Positions 7,101 through 20,800 of a stretch of 64,000 nucleotides of DNA are shown one piece after another (the stretch's first letter is position 1; every line of letters starts with the position of its first letter). The position numbers and the translations under genes are program-made. This DNA comes from Orbicella franksi. Taxonomy: Eukaryota. Under the pieces are notes generated by a model. That model was not told the DNA's origin, did no database searches, and worked only from the letters and a program-made list of their open reading frames with translations. The stretch spans positions 28,210,001-28,274,000 of the forward strand of contig OZ116703.1 of assembly GCA_964199315.1 (NCBI GenBank), in the 5' to 3' direction.

Positions 7101-8834
7101 CTAGGGGGACATCAAACTCTGGATTCAGTACATTGAGTTCTGTAAACACATGGTAGGAATTTAATTACATGTAGTATGTGTTATTTTGTTTGTTTTGTAA
7201 TCTAGATAATATTATATTATTAAAGAAATAGAAAACATGTACCATGTTTCTATCGAGTTATACATGTAGGGTGAGTGGAAGTTTGGGAGAACGAGAAATG
7301 CTGTGGGAGCATGAGCTGCAGGCAACTGTTTCCACAGCTTTTTTGAGTTCTCCCAAACTTTCATGAGTGTTTCTATAACTCAATAGAAACGTGGAGAACA
7401 TGTTTTATATTTCTTCTAGAAAACACCGCGACAAAAAAAGAAAAACAGCTTGTTTACTTTGATCATCAAAATGTAAATTCTCTTTGCTTGCGCCATCATC
7501 ATGTCAACAGCTCGTGCTAGTTCTGTGTTTCCATCGTGTTATAGAAACACGATTTTTAACCAGTCAGCGTGCATATTTTCTTAGAAGTGAAGTGAAGCCT
7601 TGGAGCCGAATGGCTCATAGCTACCAGAGCTTATCCCGGTTTCTGTAGCATGAAGCGGCTAGGAGTATTTCTACTCCCTCTGGACGGGATGCTAGTCCAT
7701 CGCAGGTCACTCCCCCGCAATTTGTTAGGTGTCCCCAACAATTCGCCAGTACCCATTTATACTCCTGAGTGGAGAGAGGCACTGTGAGAGTTAAGTGTCT
7801 TGCCTAAGAACACAACACAGTGTCCCCAGCCAGGGCTCGAACCCGGACTGCTCGCTCCCGGAACGAGCGCACTAACCATGAGGCCACCACGCCTCCCTAT
7901 TTTCTTAGGGCTGTTTCTAATTTAATTTTGATTTCAGGCTTTGTTCATACATTCATGAGGATTAAGTTCTCCCTTGCTGGCACCCTATATGTAGATATTT
8001 TCGATGCAAATAACTTTCAGTTGTTATAAATAAATTTAATCAGTCTTTTGAGTCGCATTGCATGCACATCTGTGTCAAATATACAATCGAACAGTCAAGT
8101 ATTTGTACTTTAATTTCAGCTACTTACTGTTATTCAAATTGACAATTATACAAATATTTACTGTCTCTTGTTCTTAGGGGAGTGTAAGGATTCTTGGAAA
8201 AGTTTTTGCCAGAGTTTTGCAGTATCATCCAAACAAACCAAGTATGACATTGCTTATAGTACTATACAACATTTGATACATGTGCACTGTATTCACTAGT
8301 TACATGTATAAGACTGTTGTTTATTAGTGGATACTGGCAAATAAAAGACAGCCATTTTTTTTTTCTAAACGTATCATTTTGATAACACTTGTAATGAGAA
8401 TGGGGATAAAAACACAGATGGCGTACTTTTTGGTGTATAATTTCTCTTTTCTTCTCTAATATCTTGCTGTATTTTAGGGCAGTATATTATACATGTATGG
8501 CTAGCTTTACTATAAAATCACTGGGAAGATTTTCAATTTCACAAGGTGTCCAAGGGTCACTGATTTTTTCTAATACCAATGGGGCTTAAATAAAGTAAAT
8601 ATTGCTAAATGCTTCTGGCCATGACCTGTACTGCCTGAAAATCAGATTGAAGTTTTTGAAGTTTGTGCAAACCTTTTGTTTGAAAATTTCTCATGGTTAC
8701 CAAACACTTTGGAAGACCAGTGCACAGTATTTCAAATTTCCTGAGTATGACATGAGAGTTTTGAAAGTGAAGAATGATCATTGCAGTAAATTTTCCAATT
8801 TAAGCAATTGGAAAGGAGAAGCCTGAAAAAATCA

Positions 8835-8868
<34 letters not shown>

Positions 8869-11800
8869 GATACCAGTGTGATGCTCTACCAACTAAGCTA
8901 TGAAGCCACACATTGGGAGCGAGGTCAATTTATTGAGTTCATATCTTGCGTGAGTAGTGAAATGATGTGAAGTTTATATGCTTATGTGAAGTTTATATGC
9001 TTAAATTGGAAAATTTACTGTGATGATCATTCTTCACTTTCATCTACAACCACAGTTCGTATATGAATTATTTCATATAAACTTCACATCACATGAGAGT
9101 TTTGTTTGTCCTGATTTCAGACCTCTGGATTATGGCAGCAAAATGGGAGTTTGAAGAAAACAAGAACATTCCTAACAGTAGATCGTTATTACAGAAAGGA
9201 CTGAGGGTTAATCCTTCTTCACAGAAGCTTTGGTTGGAGGTAATACTACATTGAACACAAGTACAATATTTATGTGCAAAAAAAAAAAAAATGTCAGAGT
9301 ACAGTACCTGTACAACATGCACCTGTAATGTAAAGGTGGGCTGTCAAGTTAGACATCTGTTTTTTAAAACAGGTAAATAGTTTAATTGAGACACAGCTGT
9401 ACAATCATGTAGAGCAATTTTGACTCAAAATATTTTACAGTTGTCTTTTGTCTGTCCTGAGGAACAGATTGATTTAAATAGTTATGCCATAATTAATGTA
9501 CCAGAGGGAGATCCGGGAAAGGGGTTGAGGGAGTTGCAACCCCCAAAATTTGACTTCATAGGGTTCGTGCATTCGCATGTTTACTTGTTTTTCTTCTGAA
9601 TTTTTTAAGTCAGTTTAGCGGATGTGTTATTGTGACTTGTCCCATATTCATAATAATTATAATCAGAACAGATGGCAAATAAAACTCAAAGTGCCATATT
9701 ACAGTAAAGTGACTACAGTACATGTACATGTTTTACATTGTATGATGCATGCCAGTGGTCTCTTTTTTTATTACGTGCTTGTTTTCTGCAGTATTTCAGA
9801 ATGGAACTCCTTCATGTTGAAAAAGTAAGTCTGACATTATAATTTATTTAATAGCTTTAATCTTTAAGCTGTTTACTTGTAATACAATGTACATTGTAAG
9901 CAGTTAATGCACATCCAGTCATACAGTAAGGAGATCTTAAATGTGGCTGTCCCTGGCTCATGCACTTTGCTGTTATTTTTTTTTCTTTGTTAGATTCATA
10001 ATAGAAGGAAAATTCTTGGATTGAGTGCAACAGATGAGGAACAGGTATGTACCATTGCTATCCATCTCATAGACAGCAGTCTGCCGACCGGCTGACAGCA
10101 AAACGCCGACTGGTTAGCTCAGTGGTAGAGCACTGGACTAGCGTACGGGAGGTCGTGGGTTTAAACCCCGGCCGGACCAACACTCAGGGTCTTTAAATAA
10201 TTGAGGAGAAAGTGTTGTCTCTGTAATGACATCTGCAAATGGTTAGACTTTCTAGTCTTCTCGGATAAGGACGATAAACCATAGGCCCCGTCTCACAACC
10301 CTTCATAATTAATTCTGTGGGACGTAAAAAACCCCTCACACTGATCAAAAAGAGAAGGGGATGTAGTTCCCGGTGTGGTGGACTCTATCTCTTATCTGAT
10401 GGTTAAATGCTCAGAGATATTAGCTGCATAAGCTACTCTGAAATCTGAGGGTAAATATTAAGTTATGTATGTATGTATGTATGTATGTGTAGCAGTACAC
10501 TCAAAAGAGAATTATTGGAAGTTGAGAGAGTGTCAGATGTAACTTGTATAATTATGTCAGAGTTTCTTGAGACACATAAAACTTGTTATGATTTTATTAC
10601 TGTAACTGGGAATGGTAGTTTGGAAATCAATGTTTGTCAGCTGGCAAATTGAAGCCAGAGAGAGGGAACCATGCTGCTACAGTACATGTATATTTATTCT
10701 ATTAAGAGATAATTTGTATTGGTTATCAAATGGTGCTGAGCTTGAAATTAGGCATTTCCTGGGCATTTTGGCAAAATTCTTACTACAGTTCAACCTCTAT
10801 TAAACAGCCACCCTCAGGGAAATGGATAGTGGCTGCTTAAAAGGGGTTGGCCCTTAAAAGAGGTAAAAACAATAGAAAAACCCTCACTGGAACTTTGATT
10901 ACTGGCCCCTGATAGGGATTGCTGTTAATAGGTGGCCGCTTAATAGGGGTTCGACTGTAATAATTTTTCGAGGCTTTAGGTGATATCTACCTTCACATGT
11001 ACATGCAGTAACAGTCATCATGGGGGAGGGCAGAGGAGGTACGTGTAGGTTTATCCTTTCAGGTACAGCATTGTGGGCCTGAGGCCAAAGTTTTGTAATC
11101 TTTGTTAAACTGCAGTAAAAATATATTTGAATACCATTAAATTATGTATGATCTATAGACATTAATTTTCTTACACTCGTGTTCATGTAACCACCCATGG
11201 GCATACTGACTAAATGATTACTGCATCGAGAGTCAAATTGTGTGGTCTTAACTTTTGACTGGTCAACATGTACTCTTTTCATTAATTTTCCAGGGAGAAG
11301 AACAAGTCACTGCTGAATTTCTGGCAGGAAAAGTTCCTGAAATTGTTTACAAAAAGGCAATACAGAGTATACCAGGTGCTGTTACATACACAGTATTATT
11401 ATATAGACATGAGTGTTTTACTGGAAAATACACCACTCGTAGAATTCATACAAAACCACATCCGGGACTCGAGTGGCATATTTTCCATATCCTCATTAGT
11501 AAGGATATCAATGATTTCACTGATATCAAGTTTGTCTCTTAAATTGTTCTTAAATTTGTTCATGTATCATCGAAACATCTTCGGGTCTTCCTCAAAAGTC
11601 TTTGGCAATCTTCGGTAATCTTCGGCAATCTTTGGAAACTTCCAGAAAATGTTCGGCAATGTTCATGTGACCTTCGGATGAGTTTTGGAGAATCTTCGGA
11701 GATCTTCAGAAAGTGGTCAGAAATCTTCGGAAAATCGTCAAGAATGCCGTCATCAGTATGTCTATATAATAAAAAGAACAATACACATTAGCTCGAAGAT

Positions 11801-17800: not shown

Positions 17801-20800
17801 ACTCAGTGGATAGACTGGTGTGTCGCCAGCAATCCAGGACAAGTAGAAGAGGTGTTTGAAGTAAGTTTACTTGTTGTTGTGTCATTTGGTTCGTTTGTAC
17901 TGCGGCTAGGGCTGACGTGATATAATTAGATGCAGCCTCGTTCCCAGGCACTCTCATATTCCCTCCTGGAGGCCTGGGAACGAGGGCATGCAGAAGAATG
18001 GCAGACAAAGTTTTGGTCTCAGACGAACATGACCTACTTGTTCATAAATTTCTAGAGCAGTGCTTTGTTGTCTGTTACAGTATCAGGGTTGTACCATATG
18101 GTTAGTCCAGGTAATAACATGCTACCGGACGATCGGTGCTGTTAAATCGAGAAGATGGGCGACAGAACAGGTCACGGTTCTTTTTTCTGTGATTGTTCGA
18201 AATGAACGTACTTTGTAACAAAGTTTTGTTAACGTTTTCATAGGAGGGCAATTGGTTTTCACAGGCGGGCAAATTGCTTTGAACTAAACTCTCTTCTAGA
18301 TGATTTAAACCAGGCCGGTAAAATCCGGCCCTTGAAGAAACCCTTTGTGAAATTGTTTTGCTTGGCCATAGTTAATAGAGGGAAAAGCTAACAAACAGGC
18401 CTAGATTTATGGAGGTCCTTGACCCTGCACATCTTTTGTTTTATGCTCGTCGAGTATGCATGCATTACATAATCGCAATGCTTCTTTTGGTTAGTTGTAA
18501 GAGCACACCTAACCACCTTTTGCATTTTGCCAGGCTTTGTACAGGGTCACCCCCAAAATAACAAACAAAAACATACAGCAAAGAACTTTGCTAAGTTTCC
18601 TAACCATTTCCCTCAGTTAACTATGGCTTGGCTAAAGCATTTTGTACTAGTCTTATGAATAAATCAATTGGAACTTAGTAAACGGAACTAAGAGAACTCA
18701 ACTTGCTATAGCCTTGAGGACGGAAGTTTTCGCAGGCTACCGTTTAACTTGTAGGAAATTAGATATTGGCTAGTCTATCATTATCGTAGTTTGGATTTGT
18801 GTTGCCTGGCTTCTCCATTACCATATGTAGTCGTTTTGCACAAAATAAAGAGTCGAGAGACGGCCATACTTTTACTAATAGTTCATATACTTGTGTCTTG
18901 TTTCAGCTTTCGTTAGAATCGTGTCTCGACATCAGGACTCCACTGAAGGAGAAGTATGTCGAATGGGCAGTCACGACAAAAGGGATTAAAAAGGCTAGAA
19001 AACTTTACAAAAGGTAAGAATTTTTTTAATAATAATTTTAATTTACAAAACATACAGTTACTTGCATTGGTTATATTGCAGGTCTTATTACAACACTCGA
19101 CTTACAGAACAATACTTACGTTATAAGTTAATAAAGATGGTGAATTTTAAGCTCGGTAATGAAATGTGAAGGTGAATTAATCAACATGACACGAGCGTGG
19201 GACAAAGAAAAATTCCGAGTCCCCGACAGGAATCGATCCCATGACCTCCCGAACACCGGGCGGACGCTCTATCCACTGAGCTACGAGAACTCATGGAGAG
19301 CAAGGTCATTTAACTGAGTTCATATATGATAGGTGTCCTGCATACTGCTAGGATCAACGCTATCGAATTCATCGTGAGTAGTGATAAGTTAATAAAGATG
19401 GTGAATTTTAAGCTCGGTAATGAAATGTGAAGGTGAATTAATCAACATGACACGAGCGTGAGACAAAGACAAATTCTGAGTCCCCCGACAGGAATCGAAC
19501 CCATGACCTTGCTCTCCATGAGTTCTCGTAGCTCAGTGGATAGAGCGCCCGCCCGGTGTTCGGGAGGTCATGGGTTCGATTCCTGTCGGGGACTCAGAAT
19601 TTTTCTTTGTCCCACGCTCGTGTCATGTTGATTAATTCACCTTCACATTTCATTACCGAGCTTAAAATTCACCATCTTTATTAACTTATCACTACTCACG
19701 ATGAATTCGATAGCGTTGATCCTAGCAGTATGCAGGACACCTATCATACATGAACTCAGTTAAATGACCTTGCTCTCCATGAGTTCTCGTAGCTCAGTGG
19801 ATAGAGCGCCCGCCCGGTGTTCGGGAGGTCATGGGTTCGATTCCTGTCGGGGACTCAGAATTTTTCTTTGTCCCACGCTCGTGTCATGTTGATTAATTCA
19901 CCTTCACAATACTTACGTTACTAGCAATAGTGTTACTTACGCTGGCAACACAATACTCTATTACAATTGAATACTGGCATTGCAGAAAATATAATAACTT
20001 ACAATACCGGCTACTTACACTACCAACAATACAAGACTCTACTTACAATAAGTACTTGTATTACTTGCAGAACATATATTTACTTACAATACTTACATTA
20101 AGTTACGCGAAATACTAAGGTAAGATATCGGTTTGTGTCTTTGTGTACGTGGTGTGTACAAGCCGTAAATTTTACTGCCTTCCGCCTAGTGTTGAAAACA
20201 CTCTTACATGTAGCTCTCAGTAGTAAAGGTTGTTTTGATGCCCTTAAGGGTTATGTCAATGTTGACTTGATTTTGTTTCGACTTTCGTTTTCTCCCTTTT
20301 AGGCTGATTCAAGCACGACCTTTTGCCATTTCTTTCTTTCGAAAATGCATTGATTTAGAACTAACACAGGTAAGCGGGTCAAAAAACTAAAAATACAGCT
20401 AGTAATGACACCCATTTTTCCTAATGAATGCAACCTGCTTGTTCCCAGGACTTTAACTTACTCCGAAAGAATGAGTTAAGTTGACCGCGAAGAGAAGACT
20501 GGTGTGGAACCTGTCTTATACGTCTCTCTACAATTTGAATTGACAGCAAATTGGAGTAACCAACAAGAGAGCGCACTACAAAACCGAATGACACAAGCTT
20601 TTAACGTTCTGGTAGCAAGCAAAACAAAGATTGGACATCAGTAAACTGTTTTTCGTTCAAATGCAGCTGCCGAAATAAGTCAGAATAAAACATGTTTTCC
20701 CATGAAACAAAACAATGTTAATTTAGGCATTTTTTTTTGGTGGGTGAACACGCAACTGTTTTTAACGTAAAATGAAATCATCGCAATGTGATTCTTGTAG

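Follow-up and report, generated by a model that had tools for sequence, protein, structure and literature searches.

The stretch of DNA analysed here (the window) comprises 64,000 nucleotides of the coral Orbicella franksi (GenBank assembly GCA_964199315.1, contig OZ116703.1, positions 28,210,001 to 28,274,000 of the forward strand) and contains, at 19109-19920, an insertion made of tandem and inverted copies of a 261-nt unit that includes a tRNA-like part. RNA contigs of two runs include an exon at 18899-19014, so the element sits in an intron whose donor site lies about 110 nt upstream. The repeat is referred to below as family 2; a related copy (family 1) lies in the same window at 8764-9090 and a third tRNA-like family was found elsewhere in the genome. 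Positions within the unit refer to window 19503-19763 as the reference unit, position 1 being the A of ATGACCT.

The element consists of two arms, delimited by BLAST against the unit and its concatemer, with a period of 261 nt inside each arm. The left arm (19120-19509, minus strand) holds 1.49 units and the right arm (19503-19908, plus strand) 1.56 units, and they share the 7 nt ATGACCT at the inversion junction (19503-19509), just as an earlier sequence-only reading of the window had described. The arms are 98% complementary over 321 nt. That reading had seen no polarity in the element, which proved mistaken since both arms direct their 3' sides outward. It had also let the ends fall in mid-unit; this is correct, but their placement is not arbitrary. 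The outer end of the left arm lies at what is called here the B site (unit ~187-190; the inner end is at unit 63), and that of the right arm at the A site (unit 145, ...CACCTTCACA), two positions that are fixed across the family and 44 nt apart. The inverted repeat begins at 19165, facing 19908, and the intervening 44 nt (unit 146-189) form a tail (19124-19164, minus strand) that is present only on the outer end of the left arm.

A perfect direct repeat (ACAATACTTACGTTA) flanks the element at 19109-19123 and 19906-19920. The sequence-only reading had recognized this repeat and given it 12-14 bp; it measures 15 nt, of which the outer 2-4 nt overlap the element ends and may be element-end sequence. 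As had also been noted, sequence inspection found no poly(A) or simple-repeat tail at the ends. Three tRNA-like modules were called by ARAGORN, with Rfam tRNA scores of 42-48 bits: one in the left arm (19217-19290, minus strand, 42 bits) and two in the right arm (19522-19595, plus strand, 47.7 bits, with a T5 run at 19600-19604; and 19783-19856, plus strand, with a T5 run at 19861-19865).

A search of the 497-Mb source genome with the 261-nt unit gave 1048 candidate places, and all scored matches except one were 93-100% identical. A 61-nt probe spanning the tail gave 1146 candidate places. The mean divergence from the family-2 consensus is 1.5% (167 unit copies from 38 distinct loci) and the right arm of the window element differs from it at only 1 of 406 positions; judged by this divergence the family is young. 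Near-identical family-2 sequence was also present in runs labelled as four organisms and in many coral metatranscriptomes.

When the arm ends were mapped at each of the 38 distinct loci on a concatemer of the unit, 25 loci proved to be two-armed, with the arms pointing outward. Every two-armed copy with readable ends (23/23) has one arm ending at 142-153, the A site, and the other at 187-195, the B site (...AACTTATCA). This count includes one end, at locus L063, that maps to 163 and was scored as B since, once an internal deletion is allowed for, the outermost bases agree with the B end. If each end picked A or B independently, at 50:50, the chance of obtaining only mixed pairs would be about 1e-7. 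The point of inversion and the number of units (1.5 to ~8) are unique to each two-armed copy, the outermost units being partial, and as the inversion junction differs from copy to copy each insertion would have produced its own. Flanking direct repeats of 8-17 nt, most often 14-15, accompany 22 of the 25 two-armed copies, so that the duplications and inversions seen in the window are indeed borne by copies elsewhere. The A and B ends (CACCTTCACA and AACTTATCA) directly adjoin the target duplication, the first 2 and last 3 nt of the direct repeats usually match the element ends, and the empty site resembles CA-N10-TG(T).

In many family-2 copies the termini read TG...CA. Together with the long inverted arms and the flanking direct repeats, this might recall a DNA transposon, or a foldback element similar to a miniature inverted-repeat transposable element (MITE), in which terminal inverted repeats enclose a satellite-like core. 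Such an origin is nevertheless highly improbable. The two ends are not equivalent, being offset by 44 nt, and each varies by several nt, while the direct repeats range from 8 to 17 nt; fuzzy ends and a variable repeat length argue against a transposase. Moreover the inversion point and the unit number differ in each copy, and the same scar is borne by an element of this genome that encodes a reverse transcriptase.

This kind of scar is known from Penelope-like elements (PLEs). Their insertions are partial tandems, often adjoined by an inverted 5'-truncated copy, and have a tail of 30-40 bp that is often present at one end only (PMC8557442). The purified PLE protein cuts both strands of the DNA and extends each of them, and it initiates reverse transcription on the RNA at two neighbouring internal sites; the genomic tail is the stretch between these two start sites (PMC11167929). 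The A and B sites of the 261-nt family fit this two-start-site model directly. The canonical endonuclease-bearing (EN+) PLEs (Penelope/Poseidon and Neptune; PMC8557442, PMC11167929) show the same partial tandems, inverted 5'-truncated arm, one-sided tail and variable duplication. The coral unit differs from them in being just 261 nt long, in lacking an open reading frame (ORF) and a detectable hammerhead ribozyme, and in carrying a tRNA-gene-like module.

The source genome itself has 1018 GIY-YIG candidates. At L066 and L068 there are open ORFs, of 788 and 751 aa respectively, that encode an RVT_1 domain followed by a C-terminal GIY-YIG domain. They belong to apparently intact PLEs (L068:995-3821 and L066:3177-5543) of a family with about 535 candidate places, the copies being 97-98% alike; Rfam detected no hammerhead in these PLEs at E up to 0.1. 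In this family the 3' end can lie at either of two positions, separated by about 85 nt. In the ORF-bearing copy at L068 an inverted arm of 254 nt ends at the shorter 3' end and the other side at the longer one, with an 11-nt direct repeat, and the copy at L043 has the same build, again with both 3' ends represented and a direct repeat of 11 nt. When the ends and duplications of family 2 are compared with those of the genome's own Penelope elements, the likeness to Penelope-mobilised repeats that the sequence-only reading had pointed out is therefore upheld.

The insert in the window is thus probably a young copy of a non-coding, non-autonomous retroelement family that was integrated by target-primed reverse transcription of the PLE type. 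We infer the use of PLE enzymes, namely the RT-GIY-YIG protein (RT, reverse transcriptase) of one of the many PLEs of this genome, from the anatomy alone. In the proposed course of events a staggered break of about 10-15 bp would be made in the intron, and both 3' ends of the break would prime on the sense-strand (tRNA sense) RNA, one at unit ~145 and the other at ~189. Each cDNA would extend inward for about 1.5 units and the two would be joined at a 7-nt complementarity built into the unit. These two-primer steps would give rise to the outward arms, the one-sided 44-nt tail, the partial tandem units and the target-site duplication. The idea of a retroposed, non-coding, tRNA-bearing repeat whose integration is primed from both target strands, already put forward from the letters of the window, is supported. 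To call it an undescribed class was too strong, as the mode of integration is that of PLEs.

Several observations weigh against this interpretation. A clear flanking direct repeat was found in only one of the 13 single-armed copies (L065), where the match extends past the repeat into adjoining family-3 units and may not be a true duplication; repeat-less single-armed copies can be explained in the PLE model only by later deletion or by irregular joining of the 5' side. The units of families 1 and 2 gave only chance-level BLAST matches with 23 PLE loci (20 with GIY-YIG and 3 longer ones, mostly of one family). The tail of family 2 has 44 nt as against the published 30-40 bp, the value for the bona fide PLE of the same genome being about 85 nt. 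In addition, the T5 run stands 4 nt past the tRNA-like part and is intact in 111 of 123 units. A transcript made by RNA polymerase III (Pol III) from the module should therefore mostly end before the A and B sites, which is hard to square with a Pol III template that reaches both start sites. The multimeric Pol III transcript that had been envisaged for this repeat is unlikely on the same grounds, the corresponding run being T6 or T7 in the sister families.

Two further observations touch on the comparison with PLEs. The word CACCTTCA is common to the unit and to the PLE family, where it occupies a non-equivalent position, and was treated as a chance match. At L010:1917-1977 the short arm of a family-2 copy is made up of the last 28-31 nt of the tail (unit 159/162-189) twice in succession, which looks like repeated initiation at the B site.

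The tRNA-like part, with its perfect A and B boxes, could also suggest a tRNA-derived short interspersed nuclear element (SINE) moved by a non-LTR (long terminal repeat) element, i.e. a long interspersed nuclear element (LINE), and inverted by classical twin priming at chance microhomology. The variable length of the target-site duplications, the microhomology of 2-3 nt at both junctions and the short overlaps at inversion junctions would all be at home in such a scheme. We consider it unlikely, however, because classical twin priming puts the second primer at varied positions whereas 23 of 23 copies have one of each fixed end, a fixed pairing that speaks against ordinary twin priming by a LINE. 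About two thirds of the copies are inverted, a poly(A), simple-repeat or LINE-like tail is lacking, and the tandem units are circularly permuted and have a conserved leader ahead of the tRNA part. Moreover the T5 run follows directly on the tRNA part, which puts a terminator downstream of the promoter and ahead of the 3' end. Classical LINE-dependent SINEs of tRNA origin likewise have A and B boxes, are non-coding and reach a high copy number, but the coral unit has no LINE-type 3' tail, its tRNA part is not at the 5' end and has a T5 run behind it, and the full cloverleaf is kept. The absence of a LINE-type tail, the internal terminator and the circular permutation of the units thus set the coral family apart from classical SINEs.

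The three families align solely from the leader motif through the tRNA-like part to the T run (T6 in family 1, T5 in family 2 and T7 in family 3), and the remaining sequence of the units is unalignable. The homology of families 1 and 2 upstream of the tRNA-like part, which the first inspection had detected, is thus confirmed and continues through that part. The A-box and B-box sequences are invariant across the three families. In the cloverleaf 89% of the cells pair, and 6 pairs of the acceptor and anticodon stems have changed on both sides, a number as high as this being reached in 0 of 500 shuffles and slid controls giving at most 1; this covariation comes from three independent families only. 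It indicates that selection acts on the fold of the putative tRNA-like module and not merely on the A and B boxes. The anticodon loop is GGT in all three families, and families 2 and 3 do not have the universal U33, so that a role in translation is unlikely. The tRNA-gene-like module as a whole (leader, cloverleaf with A and B boxes, and T run) appears to be maintained by selection on its RNA fold in the master copies, where it could serve as a promoter, a stability element or a recognition element.

The leader motif ATGACCT is the complement of AGGTCAT at the boundary of the variable loop and the T stem, and the adjacent GAACTCA can pair with TGGGTTC. This complementarity of 13-14 nt between leader and T arm is present in all three families compared. 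The 3' ends of antisense cDNAs that reach the leader and the T arm can anneal there, which would explain the 7-nt junction of the window element. Covariation of the leader/T-arm helix was sought across the three families and gave one-sided changes only, so that the helix has no support aside from the conserved complementarity. The fold of the unit is unremarkable, with a z-score of -1.7 for a stretch that included 44 nt of flank, and the pairing of leader and T arm is visible in it. The inner ends of the arms are in mild excess at unit 234-258, just upstream of the leader (14/63 against 6 expected, for a range chosen post hoc). A seeming hot spot of inner ends at unit position 1 was an artefact of the point at which the query had been cut; with a concatemer query the milder excess at 234-258 was left.

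A fold that is conserved in this way raises another explanation, in which the element follows a cycle similar to that of retrozymes, the tRNA fold taking the place of the hammerhead: host tRNA enzymes would cut multimeric RNAs, a ligase would circularise the products and reverse transcription would proceed by rolling circle. This cycle would be compatible with integration by PLE enzymes. It would account for a cloverleaf whose acceptor and anticodon stems are kept by compensatory changes in three families, and also for the lack of a ribozyme. No ribozyme was found in Rfam at E up to 10 on either strand of window 19000-20000, the scan that the sequence-only reading had called for, and besides tRNA no family matched meaningfully up to that threshold. 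The CUGANGA hammerhead core is absent from both strands of the consensus dimer. In six PLE loci of this genome no hammerhead was found in Rfam at E up to 0.1 either, although minimal PLE hammerheads are easily missed.

The variation among the units of one array bears on the same question. Some elements have private variants in all their units and in both arms (7/7 in L063 and 4/4 in each of L057, L052 and L019), as expected of an array spun from a single unit, whereas 36 variants are limited to a subset of the units of their element. Array length also shifts at the DNA level. Two copies 26 kb apart, L005 (C5:15415869-15416425) and L006 (C5:15389137-15389954), have flanks that are 99% identical and contain 2.55 and 3.55 units, respectively, which means that units were gained or lost through unequal exchange or slippage once the segment had been duplicated. 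Retroposition and DNA-level events thus both alter the arrays, and rolling-circle copying, template jumps and multimeric templates cannot be told apart here as their source.

The subsets of variants and the DNA-level change both count against a retrozyme-like cycle. Moreover, cleavage by RNase P and RNase Z would free the tRNA part rather than a whole unit, and inner arm ends do not cluster where the tRNA part begins or stops: of 63 such ends, 4 fall no more than 5 nt from the 3' border (2.7 expected) and 1 falls at the 5' border. The polyA reads also reflect read-through only. In two polyA RNA-seq runs, of about 1.5 and 1.9 billion letters, 9 and 344 reads map to the element. They run in both directions equally, and more than half of them continue into sequence unlike the window, their loose ends beginning exactly at A or B; as they pass beyond these ends into foreign flanks, they are read-through transcripts of other copies. 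The unit-length RNA that had been predicted therefore did not emerge from these few reads, and neither did discrete ends or a circular or processed RNA, although polyA libraries would have been unable to reveal such RNAs anyway. Very high summed depths of metatranscriptome contigs were rejected as a sign of expression, since they fit the copy number multiplied by intronic or DNA background (flank 16.5 against exon 49). On balance such a cycle is unlikely. We give an equally low standing to the proposal that the tRNA module substitutes for the hammerhead and that the template RNA is defined or made circular by host RNase P/Z, tRNA ligase or Pol III acting on this module. If this were true, the family would represent a ribozyme-free, host-processed branch of the Penelope-dependent elements.

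Integration of the PLE type remains the preferred interpretation, and published repeats can be compared with the coral family on this basis. The non-LTR retrozymes of metazoans (PMC7229834; bioRxiv 10.64898/2026.07.22.740005) are likewise small non-coding tandem units (170-400 nt) with duplications longer than 4 bp. Both they and the coral family occur in genomes of Acropora-type corals, and both are thought to be PLE-dependent. A type I hammerhead and a circular RNA are the defining features of retrozymes, whereas the coral family has no detectable hammerhead and its polyA reads gave no circular or unit-length RNA; since a hammerhead was tested for and not found, the family is by definition not a retrozyme. 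A tRNA-like part is not mentioned in these two retrozyme papers. The closest published precedent for such a part is Sm-alpha of Schistosoma, which together with Sj-alpha is also a tRNA-derived, SINE-like repeat of satellite type (PMC2770079). More than 2300 copies of Sm-alpha are called as tRNA-Gln by tRNA finders (PMC2770079). Sm-alpha has an active hammerhead, which the coral unit does not, and the likeness is drawn from published descriptions. So far as the literature on animal retrozymes and PLEs could be searched, it makes no mention of a tRNA-bearing form without a hammerhead.

The transposition of PLEs is poorly known, and the model of initiation at two sites and on two strands rests on one in vitro study (PMC11167929), with which the 23 of 23 two-armed copies having one end of each kind agree. 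The family offers more than 1000 candidate places at which a young natural substrate of 261 nt can be read base by base for start sites, tail, junctions and target sites. It also suggests that a non-autonomous element of the Penelope type can lack a hammerhead and yet keep a selected full cloverleaf, which bears on the purpose of the hammerhead in PLEs and retrozymes. In genome annotation, such copies are liable to be taken for tRNA pseudogenes, SINEs or inverted satellites.

The family-1 copy of the window (8764-9090, minus strand) is two-armed as well. Its tRNA-like part lies at 8835-8907 on the minus strand and the A site of that arm at 8764, and a short opposite arm extends about 48 nt beyond, to the B site at 9090. 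The copy thus has one end of each type, and a 14-nt direct repeat, ACATGAGAGTTTTG, stands on both sides. The third tRNA-like family was found adjoining a family-2 copy in L065 (L065:1465-2660). There a 5'-truncated family-2 array (1594-2192) ends at the A site and abuts an A-like motif of family 3 (…TTCTTCACCA), more family-3 units being present on the far side of the array. This junction can reflect either an insertion into the start or cleavage site of a relative or a template switch between families.

Another GIY-YIG locus of the source genome has a different domain order. At L067:1756-6083 (minus strand) an ORF of 1023 aa, which matches GIY-YIG close to the C-terminal end, precedes a separate ORF of 379 aa with a strong RVT_1 match. 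This order, with the endonuclease upstream of the reverse transcriptase, is permuted and reminiscent of Naiad-type PLEs.

A metatranscriptome contig (run X1) joins window position 19052 to 19906 through 7 other letters, and so bypasses the element together with 71 nt of flank. It may derive from an allele or a related species that does not have the insertion, the shorter side of the match being just 22 nt and the flank being of low complexity. At L023:2573-2644 the right flank of a family-2 copy is another tRNA-like repeat, called as tRNA-Ser TGA, so that family 2 was inserted here into or beside a different tRNA-derived element. Finally, L052 and L053 (C11:7625509-7626411 and C11:7191004-7191906), 434 kb apart, hold the same element with identical flanks; in both, 85 nt of unrelated sequence stand exactly at the inversion junction, and both arms end at unit position 154.

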